Source: Phaeosaccion multiseriatum
Taxonomy: Eukaryota > Protista > Ochrophyta, other classes
Length of the DNA stretch: 64,000 nucleotides
Assembly (NCBI GenBank): GCA_965112735.1
Contig: OZ218953.1
Span: 3,348,001-3,412,000, forward strand
Direction of reading: 5' to 3'
The notes under the pieces are model-generated. The model was given only the letters and a program-made list of their open reading frames with translations. It was not told where the DNA came from and made no database searches. The position numbers and the translations under genes were made by a program. Positions 42,742 to 50,781 of the stretch are shown piece after piece (positions within the stretch are counted from its first letter, which is position 1; each line of letters starts with the position of its first letter).

Positions 42742-45700
42742 ATGGCTAGGTCCAGTAAGAAGAGAAAGAGGCCCGGGTCCCCCTCCTCCACCGCTACTGC
42801 CGCCCCAGCAGCCGAGCCCAGCGCTGGTCGGGCTTCGGAAGGTGGGGGTGTCGCTGGGGACGACAATACCTTGCTGAGGAGGTCGAGGAGGCGTGCGCGA
42901 GCTCCGTCTCGGGCTGACGATGGTCCCGAGACGCCTGCTTCCGCCCCGACGGGCAAGAGGGGAGAGAAAAGGGCTCGCCCACAGGCATCTGCCTCTGCGA
43001 TTGCCGCGGCCACTGCTGCTGCTGCTGCTGCCTCGGCCGCCATTGCAGAGTTAGGATCTCCTACTGCAGGGATACGTGGCACTTCCGCGGCTCCGACCTC
43101 CGTCAGTGAAGGCACCGCCTCTCGGGCGACTACGCGCTCATCACCACCACCAGCATCGTCGCGATCATCACCACCACCAGCAGCACCAGCAGTAACGCCA
43201 GCAGCGCCAGAAGCACCAGCAGCAGCGGTTCCGTCACTTTGTGTGGCCTCACCCCGCCTGCCAGGCTTCAGCTCACCTCCCACAGGGGCTCCAAAGCGGC
43301 GGATTCGCGACTACTCGGGGCGAGACCATTCCAAGCGGAAATCGCGCGCCAAACCAATCGACCCCTCCAGACCACCGCCCATGCTCCGCGCAGAGGCAAT
43401 GGCGTGGGCTGCCGCGTTGGGCAAGGACGCCCTCGAGCACGTGAGAGAGCACGGCAGGCGGCACGTGGCGGCAAAGAGGGCGCTGAGAGCGGCGAGCCCC
43501 ACCTGCCCCGCGCACATGCACACACTGCAGCTCAACTTTATCGTGTATCGAGTCGCAGTGAGGAGGAGGGGGGGATGGGGAGGGGAAGGGAGAGGGGGGC
43601 GAGAGGAGGGAAGGAGCAGCCCCAGCAGGAGCACCAGGGCGGGTGGAGTGAGGAGTGGGAGAGGGCAAGGAGGTGATAACGGAGGCGAAGGTGAAGAAGG
43701 TGGTGCTTTCGTTTCCGTGGTGGTCGAGCACTTTGTCGACATCGCTGAGGCCCTTGAGCTCAGCAGAATGGCGCTGACCAGGGCTGAGGCCTGCGCTGCG
43801 GCGGTGAGGGCCTCACCCCACACGGCGGAGGGCCTCCATAGGGGCATGGTGGCCGGGTTCGAGTACCGCAACATATTGTCGGTGAAGGACATGATCAAGA
43901 GGCAACATGTGCCCGCGGAGGAGAAGGTAGCCAAGGCGGTGCGCTCGGCAGAGGCAGCGGTACGTGTGTGGTGTTGTGTGTGTGGTGTGTGGTGTGACTG
44001 CCACGCCACGCTCCCTATGCTGGAGGAGGTTAGGGAACGAGCGAAGGGCAGACAAGTGCTTTCTGTCTTCCTTGTGCTTTTGCAGGGCTCGCTCATGCCC
44101 CCTCCCCTTGATGTCCCGTTTCATCTGCCCTCCGGGACAAGAAGGTCACTCAGCTACCCCATGCTTTCTTCCTCTTCCTCCCCCCCCCCCCCTTTCCATG
44201 TCGAACAGGTACGCAGCGCTGAGGCTCTGTCACGCCAGGCAGGGGAGGCTGCCGTCCATTCCGCGAGGGAGCGGGGAGACGCAGGTGCCGAGTATGTGTC
44301 CATAGAGCTTGCCCTGCCATACCCCCTACCAGTGGCGTGTACGTGCGGGCCGCCCGTGGGCCCGTCGGATAAGGTGTCGTCCGCGGAGAAGGGGTGGCGC
44401 TGGGGGGGGGGCGTTGTAGATGCTGCTGCTGCTGCTGCTGCTGCTGTATCGCCAAAGGCTGGTGCTGCTAGAGGCGGTGGTGGTGCTGCTGCTGCAGCTG
44501 CCAGCGGTGAAGAACAGCAGGAACAGGAGCAGCAGGAACAGGAGCAGCAGGAGCAGGAACAGGGGGAGAAGACAAAAGGCGGCGGGACGACGCGAGGGAA
44601 GAGCAAAGGAGGAGAGTCATCATCGCTAGAGACAGAGGCAGGGAGTAGGAACGCGACCTGGGCCGAGCGGCAGGAGAGGGCTTGGCTGAAGAACCTCCCG
44701 CCCCGCCCCAAGAGCACGAGGGTGCTGGCCACGGCAGCGCAGACCCTCTTGGAGCGAGATGGGCCCTTGCGTATCTCTCGCGAGCTTTTGAAGGTCAAGC
44801 TGCGCCAGAGGCTCGCACAAGAGGTGCGCAGGGCTTTTGTGCAGCTCAAGGGCGTAGAGGGGATGGGGCTGCTGGCCGCGACGACAGAGTCAGGGTCAAG
44901 ATCAGGGTCAAGATCAGGGTCAAGATCAGGGTCAAGATCAGGGTCAAGATCAGGGTCAAGATCAGGGTCAAGATCAGGGTCAAGATCAGGGTCAGGGTCA
45001 GGGTCAGGTTCAGGGTCAGGGTCAGGGTCGGCGGTCTCCCCCTTTGCAGCGGCCTTGGGCCCCGTGCTGCGGGCAGCTCTGCCGGAAGTCGTGGAGCAGA
45101 CCCTAGCCTACGGACGGGGGCGCTACGCAGAGGCGGTGGAGGACGTGACGGAGTATGCAGAGCGACTCCCCTCCACACGCAACGACCTTTGCCGCAGCGG
45201 GGGCGTCGCGCGGGGGGGTGGCAGAGGTGGTGCTGGTGCTGGTGATGGTGTTGGTGGTGCAAATAGCGGTGCGGGGGGCAGTGGGGGCGGCGGGGCGGCG
45301 AGTAGTGATGGCAGTGCTGCCACGCAGGGTGACGTGGACACCGCTGCTTCTGTCGCTGCTGCCGGGGCTGCCGCCTCCATTGCTGCTGCGGCCGCTAGCG
45401 AAGGGTCCGCAGGTACTACCACAGCGACTGGTGCTGCTGCTACATCACCCAGTGCTCCTTCTAGTGGTGCTGCTGTATTACCCACTGCACCAGCTGGCGG
45501 TCGCGCTGTCGTGGCCGAAGAGGCCTCTAGCACAGCAGCAGCCCCACCCCCGGCATGGAGCACCTCCAAGTGCGCCAACTGCGGCAAGTGCTTCGGTCAA
45601 GGAGGAGGAGCAGCATTTGTTGGTACAGCAGGAGCACAAGCAGAAGCAGGAGGAGGAGGGGGCGGCGGGCGGCAGGGCCTCCTTTGCACGTGCACCGATC

Positions 45701-46767
45701 GCAGCTTCACTCGCGCCGAGAAGCTCCTGCGTCAGGAGGAAGCGCTTGTGGGGGAGGACTGGGTCTGGAGAAGGGCCAAGGGCAAGGGCAAGAGTGTCTT
45801 GCTTCCCGGCGAGGCCGGTCCGGGAGGGGGAGGCACTAGCAATGCAGGCAGTGCCCTTATCCACGCACTGTGCATGTCGTCTTCCGCCACTCTTCCTCCT
45901 ACTAGCCCTCCTGGTCGTGGGCGTGGGGGCAGCAGCAGCAGGAGGAGGAGGAGGGCCAGCGGAAAGACAACAGGCATCCAGCAGCAGCAGCAGCAGCAGC
46001 AGCACCTCCTCCAGCACGAAGATGAGGCAGTGCAAGAAGCAGCCTTGTGGCGGCTCCACTTTTCCACCGACTACGAGCCTGCGATTGCGCAGTGGTTCGC
46101 GCACGGCCCCTCCTCCTCCTCCGGCGGCGGCGGCGGTGGCTCTGAACGGGAGGGACAGGAGGCGTCCTGGGGCGGAGCGGGCGGCAATTTCCCCTTCGCA
46201 GCAGCAGCAGCAGGTCCGGCTCCGGCTCTGGCTCCTCGTCCCGACCCCTCTGTGCCTGAGAAGAAGAAGAGGGGTCGAGCAGCCGGCTGGGGCTACAAGT
46301 GCATCCCTCCCCCTCCCTCGCCGCCAGCCCCCGTGGCTGCCCCCGTTCTCCGACCGTCCCGCGGCCTGCTCGGCTATTTGCACCTCCTGGCAAGTCAAAA
46401 GACAGAGGGCACGCCTCAGCTGCGGGGCTTGATGGACGAGTCGGCGTTGCTCGTGTCGGGGGTGTTGCTGGAGGAGATGATGGGGCAGGTGGTGCGGCGG
46501 TGGAGGAGGAGCAGGTACAGGACGGAGGCGGGCGGGGGGGGGCACGCCGCACTGAAGGAGGAGGAGCAGGAGGAGGAGGAGGAGGAGGAGGAGGAGGAGG
46601 AGGAGGAGGAGGAGGAGGAGCGACAGAGGCGGACCGTAGCGGGAGCGGAGGAGGAGGATGATGAAGAGGAGGAGGAGGAGGAGGAGGAGGAGGAGGAGGA
46701 GGGGGAGGAGGGGGAGGAAGAGGATGAGGAGAAGGACGAGGATGAGGATGATGATGAAGTCATGTAG
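42742..46767 (+). CDS. Large, mostly low-complexity, probably nuclear protein with C-terminal Rrn10-like motif and acidic tail
   Basis: 1341-codon open frame with N-terminal NLS (KKRKRP). Probable in-frame intron 43960-44208. CANCGKC...CTC Cys cluster. RPSRGLLGYLHLLASQ...LMDESALLVSGVLLEEMM. Poly-E/D end. Confidence 0.7.
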   Translation: MARSSKKRKRPGSPSSTATAAPAAEPSAGRASEGGGVAGDDNTLLRRSRRRARAPSRADDGPETPASAPTGKRGEKRARPQASASAIAAATAAAAAASAAIAELGSPTAGIRGTSAAPTSVSEGTASRATTRSSPPPASSRSSPPPAAPAVTPAAPEAPAAAVPSLCVASPRLPGFSSPPTGAPKRRIRDYSGRDHSKRKSRAKPIDPSRPPPMLRAEAMAWAAALGKDALEHVREHGRRHVAAKRALRAASPTCPAHMHTLQLNFIVYRVAVRRRGGWGGEGRGGREEGRSSPSRSTRAGGVRSGRGQGGDNGGEGEEGGAFVSVVVEHFVDIAEALELSRMALTRAEACAAAVRASPHTAEGLHRGMVAGFEYRNILSVKDMIKRQHVPAEEKVAKAVRSAEAAVRVWCCVCGVWCDCHATLPMLEEVRERAKGRQVLSVFLVLLQGSLMPPPLDVPFHLPSGTRRSLSYPMLSSSSSPPPPFHVEQVRSAEALSRQAGEAAVHSARERGDAGAEYVSIELALPYPLPVACTCGPPVGPSDKVSSAEKGWRWGGGVVDAAAAAAAAVSPKAGAARGGGGAAAAAASGEEQQEQEQQEQEQQEQEQGEKTKGGGTTRGKSKGGESSSLETEAGSRNATWAERQERAWLKNLPPRPKSTRVLATAAQTLLERDGPLRISRELLKVKLRQRLAQEVRRAFVQLKGVEGMGLLAATTESGSRSGSRSGSRSGSRSGSRSGSRSGSRSGSRSGSGSGSGSGSGSGSAVSPFAAALGPVLRAALPEVVEQTLAYGRGRYAEAVEDVTEYAERLPSTRNDLCRSGGVARGGGRGGAGAGDGVGGANSGAGGSGGGGAASSDGSAATQGDVDTAASVAAAGAAASIAAAAASEGSAGTTTATGAAATSPSAPSSGAAVLPTAPAGGRAVVAEEASSTAAAPPPAWSTSKCANCGKCFGQGGGAAFVGTAGAQAEAGGGGGGGRQGLLCTCTDRSFTRAEKLLRQEEALVGEDWVWRRAKGKGKSVLLPGEAGPGGGGTSNAGSALIHALCMSSSATLPPTSPPGRGRGGSSSRRRRRASGKTTGIQQQQQQQQHLLQHEDEAVQEAALWRLHFSTDYEPAIAQWFAHGPSSSSGGGGGGSEREGQEASWGGAGGNFPFAAAAAGPAPALAPRPDPSVPEKKKRGRAAGWGYKCIPPPPSPPAPVAAPVLRPSRGLLGYLHLLASQKTEGTPQLRGLMDESALLVSGVLLEEMMGQVVRRWRRSRYRTEAGGGGHAALKEEEQEEEEEEEEEEEEEEEEERQRRTVAGAEEEDDEEEEEEEEEEEEEGEEGEEEDEEKDEDEDDDEVM
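44890..45027 (+). repeat. Coding minisatellite (TCAGGGTCAAGA)x8 + (TCAGGG)n encoding (SGSR)n(SG)n
   Basis: Read directly. Confidence 0.92.
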
Positions 46768-47164: not shown

Positions 47165-47404
47165 GCGGACCAACACACACACACAGAGAGAGAGAATGAG
47201 CGCTAATAAAAAACGCGAAACGCACAAATCGAAGTTTTTGCCCCCCTCCCTCCCCCCCCCCCCCTCCACGACAGGCATGCAGAAGCAGCCTCCTCTCCAA
47301 GCAAGCGCAAGGAGAAGGTGTAGCTATAGCGCGCTAGTTCGACCACGCAAGTGAGTGAAGTGAGGTAGGTGTGTGCCGGTCTACGCACTACCATCCACTA
47401 CCAT

Positions 47405-49831
47405 CTATGCCAGTGCGTGAAGGTCGGCGGGGTACTTGATGATGCCTTCTGAGAACCTGGGCTCTGCGCTGACAATGTAGGCCCCCCCGTCGGAGGGAGT
47501 GGTCACGAACACTTGCCCCTCCACCCCTCTATCACGCGCCGCCTCCAGCATAGCCTCTGCCACCTGCGGCGATAGGTAGACAGGTAGACCGGCCGGCAGG
47601 CAGGCAGGCAGGCAAGCGAGTAGTATGTCAGACAAGGCCAAGTTGGTAGTACGTCAGGCAAAGATCAAGTGAGTAGAAAGTCAGGCAAGATCAATGTCAG
47701 GGTCAGGGTGAAGGCCAGGCACAAAAAGACATGCCCAAACTTTGCCAAGAAGAAGGCCGTCCCTCCCTGACTCCCTCTCCGCTTTGCGCACCTGCCTATC
47801 CACTCTCTCTGCCTCTCTCTGCGTGAAGATGTCCCCACTGGCTCCGCTCGTAAGGGCGGCAACCGTCGGACCCGCTCCACTGAGATATGCGCCACACGCC
47901 CCCGCCTCCACCGCAGCCTGTGGAGGGGAGGGACGGAGGGAAGGGGGGAGGAGATGTAAGTCGATGAATGGAAGCGCGAAGGTCAGAGCGCAGGGCAGGT
48001 CAAAGGACAACAGAGCCAAGCCAAGCTTCAGCGGCCATAAAGAGCACGGCGTGCTGGCCCGTAGCAGGGGAAACACAGGACGAACAAGGCCGCCAAGAAG
48101 ATAAGCGAGCGAATGAACAACCAACACGCGAAGTACCTCCATCATGTCGTTGAGGTAGGGATACACCGCCGCTGCCCGTTGGGGCTGGTGGAGGGCGTCT
48201 TGGAACCCGCACTGGTGAGGGAGGGAGGGAGGGAGGGGGGGAGGATAGACAAGGAGCGGGGGCGGGGTGGTGGATCAGCCTAGCTCGGACTTGCCGGCCT
48301 TTCGTCGTGGTCGGAAGGAACAGTAGTATAGTGGAGAGGAGAAGTAGCGCACTACGGCTTGCTGTGAGACCCCACAGCCCCACCCTCACTGCTCGCCATC
48401 GATCGAAAACGACATATCCATATACCTTCAAATTGTCCAGGTTGCCCGAGCTCAGCGCGTTGATGAGCCAGGCCACTCTGCCCAGCGTGAATTTGGCCTC
48501 GTCTCGCGTGACCGTATCGTTGAGCACGCCGCGGGCAGTGCTAGTCTTCCCGATGAAGTCGGGGATGAAGAGCACCACCTGCCGCACATCACAAAGAGCA
48601 CAGTACGGTCGAAGGAGAGCAGTGGGGCGACAGTGGGGGGACGGGGAGGACAGGGGAGGAAGACACAGACACACCCGCGTGAATGAATCAATGTTGAGAG
48701 AAGAGCAAAGGACAAGACACTCATTTCATCTTCTTCCCCTTCGCGAGAGATTCACTCTGTGCAGGCACAGCCCTACTCTTGGTTCCCTCCTGCTCCCTGC
48801 CGTCCCTTCCTGCACAAGGGCTCCGATGGGCTGGACTATGGGATAGACAACGCCTCCTGCCGCCCCCTCGCCCCCCTTCCTCTTCCTCCCACACGGGCCG
48901 CACCTGGAGGCCTGCTGGTAGCGGCACCCTCTCTGACTGCCACCTCTCTCCATTGTGGATGCCCATTTGGCACCCGCCGTAGATGACCGGGGCGACATTA
49001 TCGGGATGTCCCTCAATCTCGCAGGCCAGCTGCAGCAGCTCCTCGCTTCCCCAGCACGGCAGCCGATGGCCTGCCAGAGCCAGGCCTGCAATCAGGCCTG
49101 CGGCAATGGCTGCGCTGCTGCTCCCCAGCCCTCGGGCATAGGGAATCCTGAGGGCAGCAGGCACCACAGACAGCGGACAGAGAGAAGGGTGCTTTGAGCC
49201 AAGAGGGGCTAGAGACAGCAAGAGGGGGAGGGAGAGACAGAGAGATCGAGTGACGCGCCCAGCCCAAAGTGACCCATGCCAAGCACCCACGCGACTCACC
49301 TGTTGATGACTTTGTACTTGAGGACGGGCATCTCCTTCCCGGCCGACTCGAAGGCAGACTTGAGCCCCACCACGATGTAGTTGCTCTCGTCCAGAGGGAC
49401 CTTGGCATGACACGAACGGAGGAGAGGGGCGTGAGCTCCACAAAGTCGAGGGAGTTGTGGTCGTATGGGGCCACTCGCGGCAGCTAAGCCTCGCGTCCTT
49501 GTCGACCTCTCTCCCCGCGCGCCTCCCCTCCGGCCACCCCCACCCTCTCAAACGCACACACTTACCTCCTCAAAGCCCTCTCCCTCGTAAACCATCTCGA
49601 ACTTATCCGCCCTCTCGACGGTGACCTCCGACCACATGTTGAGGGCCATACCCAGGCAGTCGTAGCCCGGGCCCATGTTGGCAGAAGTGGCGGGCACGCG
49701 CACCGTCACCTTGGTTCTCTCCTGTGGAGGCCGGAGTGTAGTACAGTACAATACATCATGGGTGTGCAATTGGACAAGAATGGTCAGAGATGGTAGCCAG
49801 CAGGACGGATGAGGCCACGCCACGCACGCCT

Positions 49832-49888
<57 letters not shown>

Positions 49889-50345
49889 CACATACCTGCG
49901 CGGCTTCAAGCATGATGGCCTCACGAATGTCAAGCGACGACATCATCTTGGACAGCTGTCTCTCTAGCCGTACGGACGGATCCCCCTCGTCCGTCCCCTC
50001 CTTCCCTCCTGACTCGCCCAGCTTCTTACTGTCAGGAGTCAAGTTCCTCTCGATGCGGTCTCTCATCTTCGCCTCGTGCTGATAGGGCATTGCCATTCGC
50101 GTCCCGTCCGCACTGCTATTCGACGACCCCCGCGCATCCCTATACTCTCCCAAGCTGCTGCTCCGTTGCTTTCTCCTCTCTGTCGCGTCCGCGTTGCCCT
50201 TGTTCGTGCTACCTCTACCGCCACCGCCGCTGCTGCTTCTGCTGCTGCCACATCTCCGCTTGGACAGCTGGGCAGCAGACAGGATTAGTGCGCCTGCCAC
50301 CGCCCCTGCTGCAAGCAGCAGCACTTTCTCTTTGCTTGACGACAT
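47405..50345 (-). CDS. thrB: Homoserine kinase (GHMP family) with N-terminal membrane anchor, 8 exons
   Basis: [51 protein letters not shown] and LSGAGPT. Confidence 0.95.
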
Positions 50346-50382
50346 GGAGGTGCTGCTGGTGTTGCCCCCCCCCCAATTCTTT

Positions 50383-50417
<35 letters not shown>

Positions 50418-50781
50418 CCACTTTCCCTCCCTTCCTTCCTTCCCTTCCCACTTCACCTCCCCTGTCAGAAGTCTAGCTTTAGCTTTGCTGTAGCCTATTT
50501 GGACGTCCACTGTACAGGGCTTTTACAACGCCCTCCTCGGTTTTAAGGCGATTTGGACGTACCACAGTTTGGGCCCCCGGGGTTTTTGGGTCACAGGGAG
50601 ATCATAGAGAGAAAGAGCAAGCAATAAGAAAAAAAAAATAGAAAAGGAAAGAGAGAAGAAGTGAGAGAGCCTTTTCCTATAAAGGAGGCTTTTCATTTGC
50701 TTGGCCGCCACTGAAGTGATCAGCGGAGGAAGGAAGGGCTGAGCGGAGGCGGGGGGGTAGGGCAAGCCGTCGGCGGTCAAG

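Follow-up and report, generated by a model that had tools for sequence, protein, structure and literature searches.

A conserved C-terminal module with possible kinship to the Pol I factor Rrn10 at the end of a long open reading frame of Phaeosaccion multiseriatum

Detailed knowledge of the machinery that recognizes Pol I promoters is available for yeast and mammals only. In yeast, Rrn10 of the upstream activation factor (UAF) has an H2A-like histone fold that is devoid of helix 3 and is paired with the H2B-like fold of Rrn9, and homologues of UAF are known from a number of fungal species (PMC9020658). UAF has been described as unique to unicellular fungi, and no RRN-type factor was found in alveolates (PMC12235521); an earlier note on the DNA analysed here, which had given UAF as generally regarded as fungal, agrees with both sources, and our literature search found no mention of an Rrn10 homologue outside fungi. 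Rrn10 is one of several factors with which the algal module described below can be compared: TAFs, SAGA subunits, CENP-S/T/X and NF-YB/C have the same predicted helix-loop-helix(-loop-helix) layout, and several TAFs, like the algal module, carry their fold within a larger, largely disordered protein. If an Rrn10-type module truly existed in stramenopiles, it would offer the first handle on how these algae select their rRNA genes, and histone-fold factors of the UAF type would have an origin wider than the fungi. Were the module in addition a true Rrn10 homologue within a UAF-like complex at the rDNA promoters, UAF would not be a fungal invention and would either descend from an early ancestor of eukaryotes or have been acquired across supergroups.

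The window, by which we mean the whole stretch of 64,000 nucleotides of P. multiseriatum DNA that was analysed, contains an uninterrupted open reading frame (ORF) of 1341 aa that is by far its longest, the second-longest reaching 523 aa (Table 1). The earlier note had reported a peptide at 46351-46767 (+) as the end of an NLS-bearing protein, and its reading was exact: these positions translate to RPSRGLLGYLHLLASQKTEGTPQLRGLMDESALLVSGVLLEEMM, followed by the basic patch, the Glu/Asp tail and a stop, together the last 139 residues of an ORF whose start, MARSSKKRKRPG, is NLS-like with a cluster of the KKRKR type. Low-complexity runs of poly-Ala, poly-Gly, poly-Ser, poly-Gln and poly-Glu are abundant throughout, and the 3-bp imperfect repeat behind the acidic tail comprises 63 copies at 46556-46748. 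The run encoded by the 12-bp repeat is rich in Arg and Ser, a type known from splicing-related proteins. Searches of Pfam with the whole ORF and with four consecutive pieces of it returned no family beyond low-complexity noise. The exact 1341-aa product was absent from the protein collection in which it was looked up, as were the products of the seven window ORFs looked up in all. Public sequencing runs containing the locus were genomic contigs of one organism only; these contigs break at the (GSRS)n repeat and at other simple repeats of the locus, and the apparent joints in four of these runs, compared with the window over 5,201 nucleotides, were rejected as an intron signal and attributed to artefacts of the simple repeats.

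Table 1. Positions of the long ORF, its C-terminal module and associated sequence features (window coordinates).
Feature	Positions	Strand	Remark
Uninterrupted 1341-aa ORF hosting the module	42742..46767	+	Translation; gene model predicted
KKRKR, NLS-like basic cluster near the N terminus	42757..42771	+	Translation; NLS role judged from composition only
Tandem repeat with a 12-bp unit (11.7 copies; 96% matches)	44890..45029	+	Encodes (GSRS)n; inside the 1341-aa ORF
Cys cluster CxxCxxC ... CxC	45550..45696 (about)	+	Translation
Conserved pre-helix block R..W.G[YF].C ... AP...P..L.PS	46255..46368	+	Common to brown algae
Core motif LGYLHLLASQKTEGTPQLRGLMDESALLVSGVLLEEMMGQVVRRW	46369..46503	+	Helix-loop-long-helix; aligns with yeast Rrn10 residues 68-114
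Basic patch RRWRRSRYR	46495..46521	+	Stands in place of the brown-algal SPMVDGRTTGYKR loop
Glu/Asp tail	46556..46764	+	Coding sequence is a trinucleotide repeat of GAG type, imperfect

To compare the C terminus with known proteins, a phmmer search with the translation of window:46018-46560 was run against 1.84 billion representative proteins, yielding a single match, P0001, a protein listed for Ectocarpus sp. 12 AP-2014 without a product name, with E=5.7e-6 and 45% identity across residues 83-160 of the query; direct comparison of the window peptide with P0001 by BLASTP gave E=1e-13. Because the motif is kept in brown-algal proteins at these E-values, the likeness goes beyond chance, and the module is, judged from the sequences, almost certainly real and conserved. 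A word search started from P0001 added eight further proteins, of which six belong to unlabelled assemblies, one is a second Ectocarpus protein and one comes from Hapterophycus canaliculatus. Word-index searches with ORF regions 1090-1265 and 1196-1262 among proteins of 738-2347 aa gave no relative, the search with region 1090-1265 being flooded by low-complexity words, and two metagenome scans, one with the three-row alignment A5 and one with the window peptide, confirmed none.

The conserved unit amounts to about 80 residues (roughly 46255-46503) and includes the whole motif. Over the 55 columns of its core the window sequence and the brown-algal relatives share 52% identity, and in 27 of these columns the window and Ectocarpus do not differ. 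Outside the module, nothing in the 1341-aa ORF was detectably common to the brown-algal relatives, which carry the module in host proteins of well over 500 aa and continue after it with a tail rich in Gln, Glu, Arg and Lys rather than in Glu and Asp. The Cys cluster and the chaperone-like acidic tail, which the earlier note had named as parts of the larger protein around a UAF-like module, are thus present in the ORF, but neither is common to the brown-algal relatives, and they therefore do not count as conserved UAF-like design.

The gene structure of the relatives was read from genomic sequence by tblastn, which revealed the module spread over four exons in five brown-algal-type loci (...PRLEEWPGFPCPSKAFARAAPMENPKGVLPPSPQVLRFIHQ / VASAKAEGTPALYGLLDESALxAVG / VLVEEMLEELVSPMVDGRTTG / YKRATPASVARELEMLGRMENRNS..., with slashes at the exon boundaries), unlike the window, in which its reading frame is continuous and unsplit. 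Automatic gene models of the brown-algal orthologues (P0004-P0009; L003:1348-2049, L004:1754-2509, L005:537-1163) read on past ...VLRFIHQ into the following intron and finish in meaningless sequence; the conserved motif is absent from them because it sits in the next three exons, past the misread intron. The annotated Ectocarpus and Hapterophycus gene models are partial at one end. Upstream of the module, the brown-algal loci have a further well-conserved exon, ..EWRMPPTCY[IV]CHLPLASxCECTAxSLxxER (L002:2164-2283, L003:489-608, L004:232-351), which by its residues is a putative CxxC...CxC zinc site; it corresponded to no Pfam family and had no significant counterpart in the window ORF. A collinear arrangement of the Cys cluster and the 'WRLHF / FRMEH' block with brown-algal exons A-C was considered and rejected by a shuffle test, in which 445 of 2000 shuffles matched or beat the score of the exon-A profile on the window ORF; profiles of exons B and C had no match to this ORF.

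Conservation in spliced genes also bears on whether the peptide belongs to a protein at all. The GC content around the ORF end is 60-68%, and three ORFs in other frames (216-425 aa) overlap this end, at 45155-46432 (+), 45478-46545 (-) and 45902-46552 (-); these look like by-products of 65-68% GC and trinucleotide repeats and not like genes. The peptide could likewise have no real protein behind it and reflect a frame that happens to stay open in DNA rich in GC and in repeats, as overlapping ORFs of 355-425 aa, the purely genomic origin of the public runs and the missing database entry would allow. Yet the proteins of annotated, spliced genes in brown algae keep the motif, and a frame of 1341 codons far exceeds any other in the window. 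We consider this explanation highly improbable for the peptide, and for the module itself it is effectively refuted already.

Next, the real and conserved module was compared with Rrn10, to which the earlier note had likened its motif. The Pfam profile UAF_Rrn10 (PF05234) had no match at E≤10 in the window ORF or in five C-terminal pieces of 60-188 aa, so that the HMMER check of the C terminus proposed in the earlier note came out negative for the window's own peptide, and a phmmer search with this peptide against all PDB sequences likewise returned nothing at E≤10. For the brown-algal homologues, the best or only Pfam family was UAF_Rrn10. The strongest match was that of the trimmed domain P0002:180-250 (E=8.6e-4, 20.0 bits), for which it was the only family listed among 24,736; the longer piece P0002:151-270 gave E=0.0029 (18.3 bits) and P0001:40-110 gave E=0.011 (16.4 bits), the full-length proteins P0002 and P0001 gave E=0.015 and E=0.16, respectively, and other brown-algal scores were 15.9, 15.2, 14.7 and 12.6 bits. 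No other histone-fold family, nor any other Pfam family, competed for these homologues. Neither the window protein nor any brown-algal homologue reached the gathering score of PF05234 (20.8 bits), the best falling within one bit of it, and the matches were confined to profile positions 66-116 of 122 rather than covering the whole domain (1-122); the matched part corresponds to residues 68-122 of yeast Rrn10. Low-complexity parts of the 1341-aa ORF produced meaningless Pfam matches at E-values of 0.02-0.03.

Results of this kind might be expected from a lineage-specific ochrophyte helical interaction module with no evolutionary link to Rrn10, whose sub-threshold matches would reflect chance or convergence between amphipathic helices carrying DE[ST][AS]L..G.L.E. 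All Rrn10 matches lying under the gathering score, the alignment of just half of the profile and the silence of the window's own sequence in both Pfam and PDB speak for such a module, as do the structure database searches with sequence profiles. The family profile A4, from which short last-exon pieces that had been misaligned in A2 and A3 were left out, ranked yeast Rrn10 (7z0o_F, residues 68-122) first among 177,635 PDB sequences, at E=0.29 and with plainly spurious runners-up (LprG and PBP2x); P0002 alone placed it third (E=1.1), and the three-row alignment A5 did not list it, making the PDB match one of noise level that is unstable across search variants.

A module unconnected with Rrn10 is harder to reconcile with three other observations. 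Rrn10 is the only family recovered for the trimmed brown-algal domain across the whole of Pfam. The homologues also resemble Rrn10 more closely than does the window sequence from which the comparison started, which argues against a chance likeness picked out by eye; the idea in the earlier note and the later profile matches nevertheless share one and the same similarity and are not independent. Finally, a family HMM of seven rows gave the yeast Rrn10 piece 16.1 bits (E=5.9e-7 per sequence), a value reached by none of 20,000 composition-matched shuffles of that piece (maximum 8.7), and the yeast match is thus more than an effect of composition. By manual count on the HMM alignment, yeast has the identical residue in about half of the columns in which the window and the brown algae never vary (L, H, A, P.L, DE..L, G.L.E), and almost never in the variable columns; as far as the alignment can be trusted, this concentration of identities in the invariant columns is as homology predicts. 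The cited literature, which treats UAF as fungal, counts against kinship. Weighing both sides, we regard the absence of any link to Rrn10 as a possibility to be taken seriously, if one that we would on the whole doubt, and kinship of the module with Rrn10, as read from sequence comparison, as an evenly balanced proposition. The earlier note had allowed that its idea would fall if profile or structural similarity to Rrn10 and conservation of the motif in other stramenopiles were both lacking. Brown algae keep the motif, and their proteins match PF05234 with E-values down to 8.6e-4; what stood of the Rrn10-like motif is thus the top-ranking Pfam family of the homologues, and what did not stand is a match above threshold or any match of the window peptide itself.

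Set side by side, yeast Rrn10 and the algal module share, within yeast residues 68-114, the pattern L..xH..A[ST]......P.L....DE[ST][SA]L...G[VL]L[VI]E, and both lead from one helix through a long loop into a second, long helix, those of the window being predicted. The low-confidence models suggest a further likeness, the window version being, like yeast Rrn10, without a clear third helix, and a difference, the brown-algal versions seeming to add one. The two also differ in that nothing in the algal module corresponds to positions 1-65, the N-terminal half of the profile, and in that Rrn10 of yeast stands alone as a protein of 145 aa whereas the window module forms the end of a 1341-aa ORF.

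The fold of the module was predicted with AlphaFold2. For the window piece alone, helices were placed at 46360-46395 and 46414-46530 (mean pLDDT 53, helices about 60), positions that, in this low-confidence model, would be those expected for histone-fold α1 and α2. With an alignment of 13 rows, P0001:11-130 was given helices at residues 40-54, 66-88 and 100-119 (pLDDT 54), a three-helix layout of Ectocarpus that, with the same low confidence, appears histone-fold-like (α1-L1-α2-L2-α3). The two-helix version of the window may fit an Rrn10 devoid of helix 3, which is a matter of consistency only. Foldseek searches of the PDB with these models had no match and VIA-align returned only generic helical hairpins (Z≤5.1). 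Models of pLDDT 53-54 are too poor to carry a fold search, and these searches were uninformative; a fold left unconfirmed in this way would also suit a module with no link to Rrn10.

In the ESM Atlas, the named neighbours of P0001:40-130 all belonged to histone-fold families (CENP-S/T, TAF, TFIID-18kDa, CENP-X and NF-YB), with scores of 0.76-0.79, a range often reached by shuffled proteins and below the level at which the tool counts a match as more than a lead. The neighbours of the window piece, GAF and SpoVT_C fragments, were taken as noise on account of low shared counts. The Atlas neighbours of the Ectocarpus domain, and the third helix that its model appears to have and yeast Rrn10 does not, would suit a histone fold of another kind (TAF, SAGA, CENP or NF-Y), kin to Rrn10 at the superfamily level only and with a role in Pol II transcription or at the centromere. 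Scores within the range of shuffled proteins lend this little force, however, and no Pfam profile of the TAF, SAGA, CENP or NF-Y histone-fold families matched even at E≤10, whereas UAF_Rrn10 did; we judge a fold of this other kind to be quite improbable.

Taken together, these comparisons suggest that the module most likely represents an Rrn10-like half-domain of the histone-fold type (α1-L1-α2). The conserved module of ~80 residues is encoded by the last ~170 codons of its host, a long protein that is mostly of low complexity and probably nuclear; a short lead-in containing Trp, Gly and Cys is followed by a predicted helix, a loop of roughly 10-15 residues and a long helix, to which the brown-algal relatives appear to add an extra loop and a third helix after α1-L1-α2. 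As a histone fold, the half-domain would form a 'handshake' pair with a second protein of that fold, the part taken by Rrn9 or its H2B-like fold in yeast UAF, and the handshake would anchor the large disordered host protein in a chromatin or transcription complex. Of the other UAF subunits, Rrn5 combines SANT with a histone fold, and Uaf30 is of the SWIB type. It is in this sense that we infer all four of the histone fold, the heterodimerization, the nuclear location and any link to Pol I or rDNA. A UAF-like role of the module at rDNA appears unlikely, and similarly doubtful is the full proposition that ochrophytes keep a true Rrn10 homologue within a large disordered nuclear protein as part of a UAF-like complex at the rDNA promoter. 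The claim of an Rrn10-type module is directly testable in Ectocarpus, a genetic model whose orthologue lies at the CAM9805817.1 locus; should the similarity be due to chance, an ordinary lineage-specific protein module would remain.

Downstream of the long ORF, the neighbouring gene lies on the opposite strand and is a multi-exon GHMP-kinase gene, recognized at 48724-49557 (-) by a match to GHMP_kinases_N (E=1.3e-11). It probably extends over about 47400-50500, and its motif looks like that of the homoserine kinase type, to which we presume it belongs.
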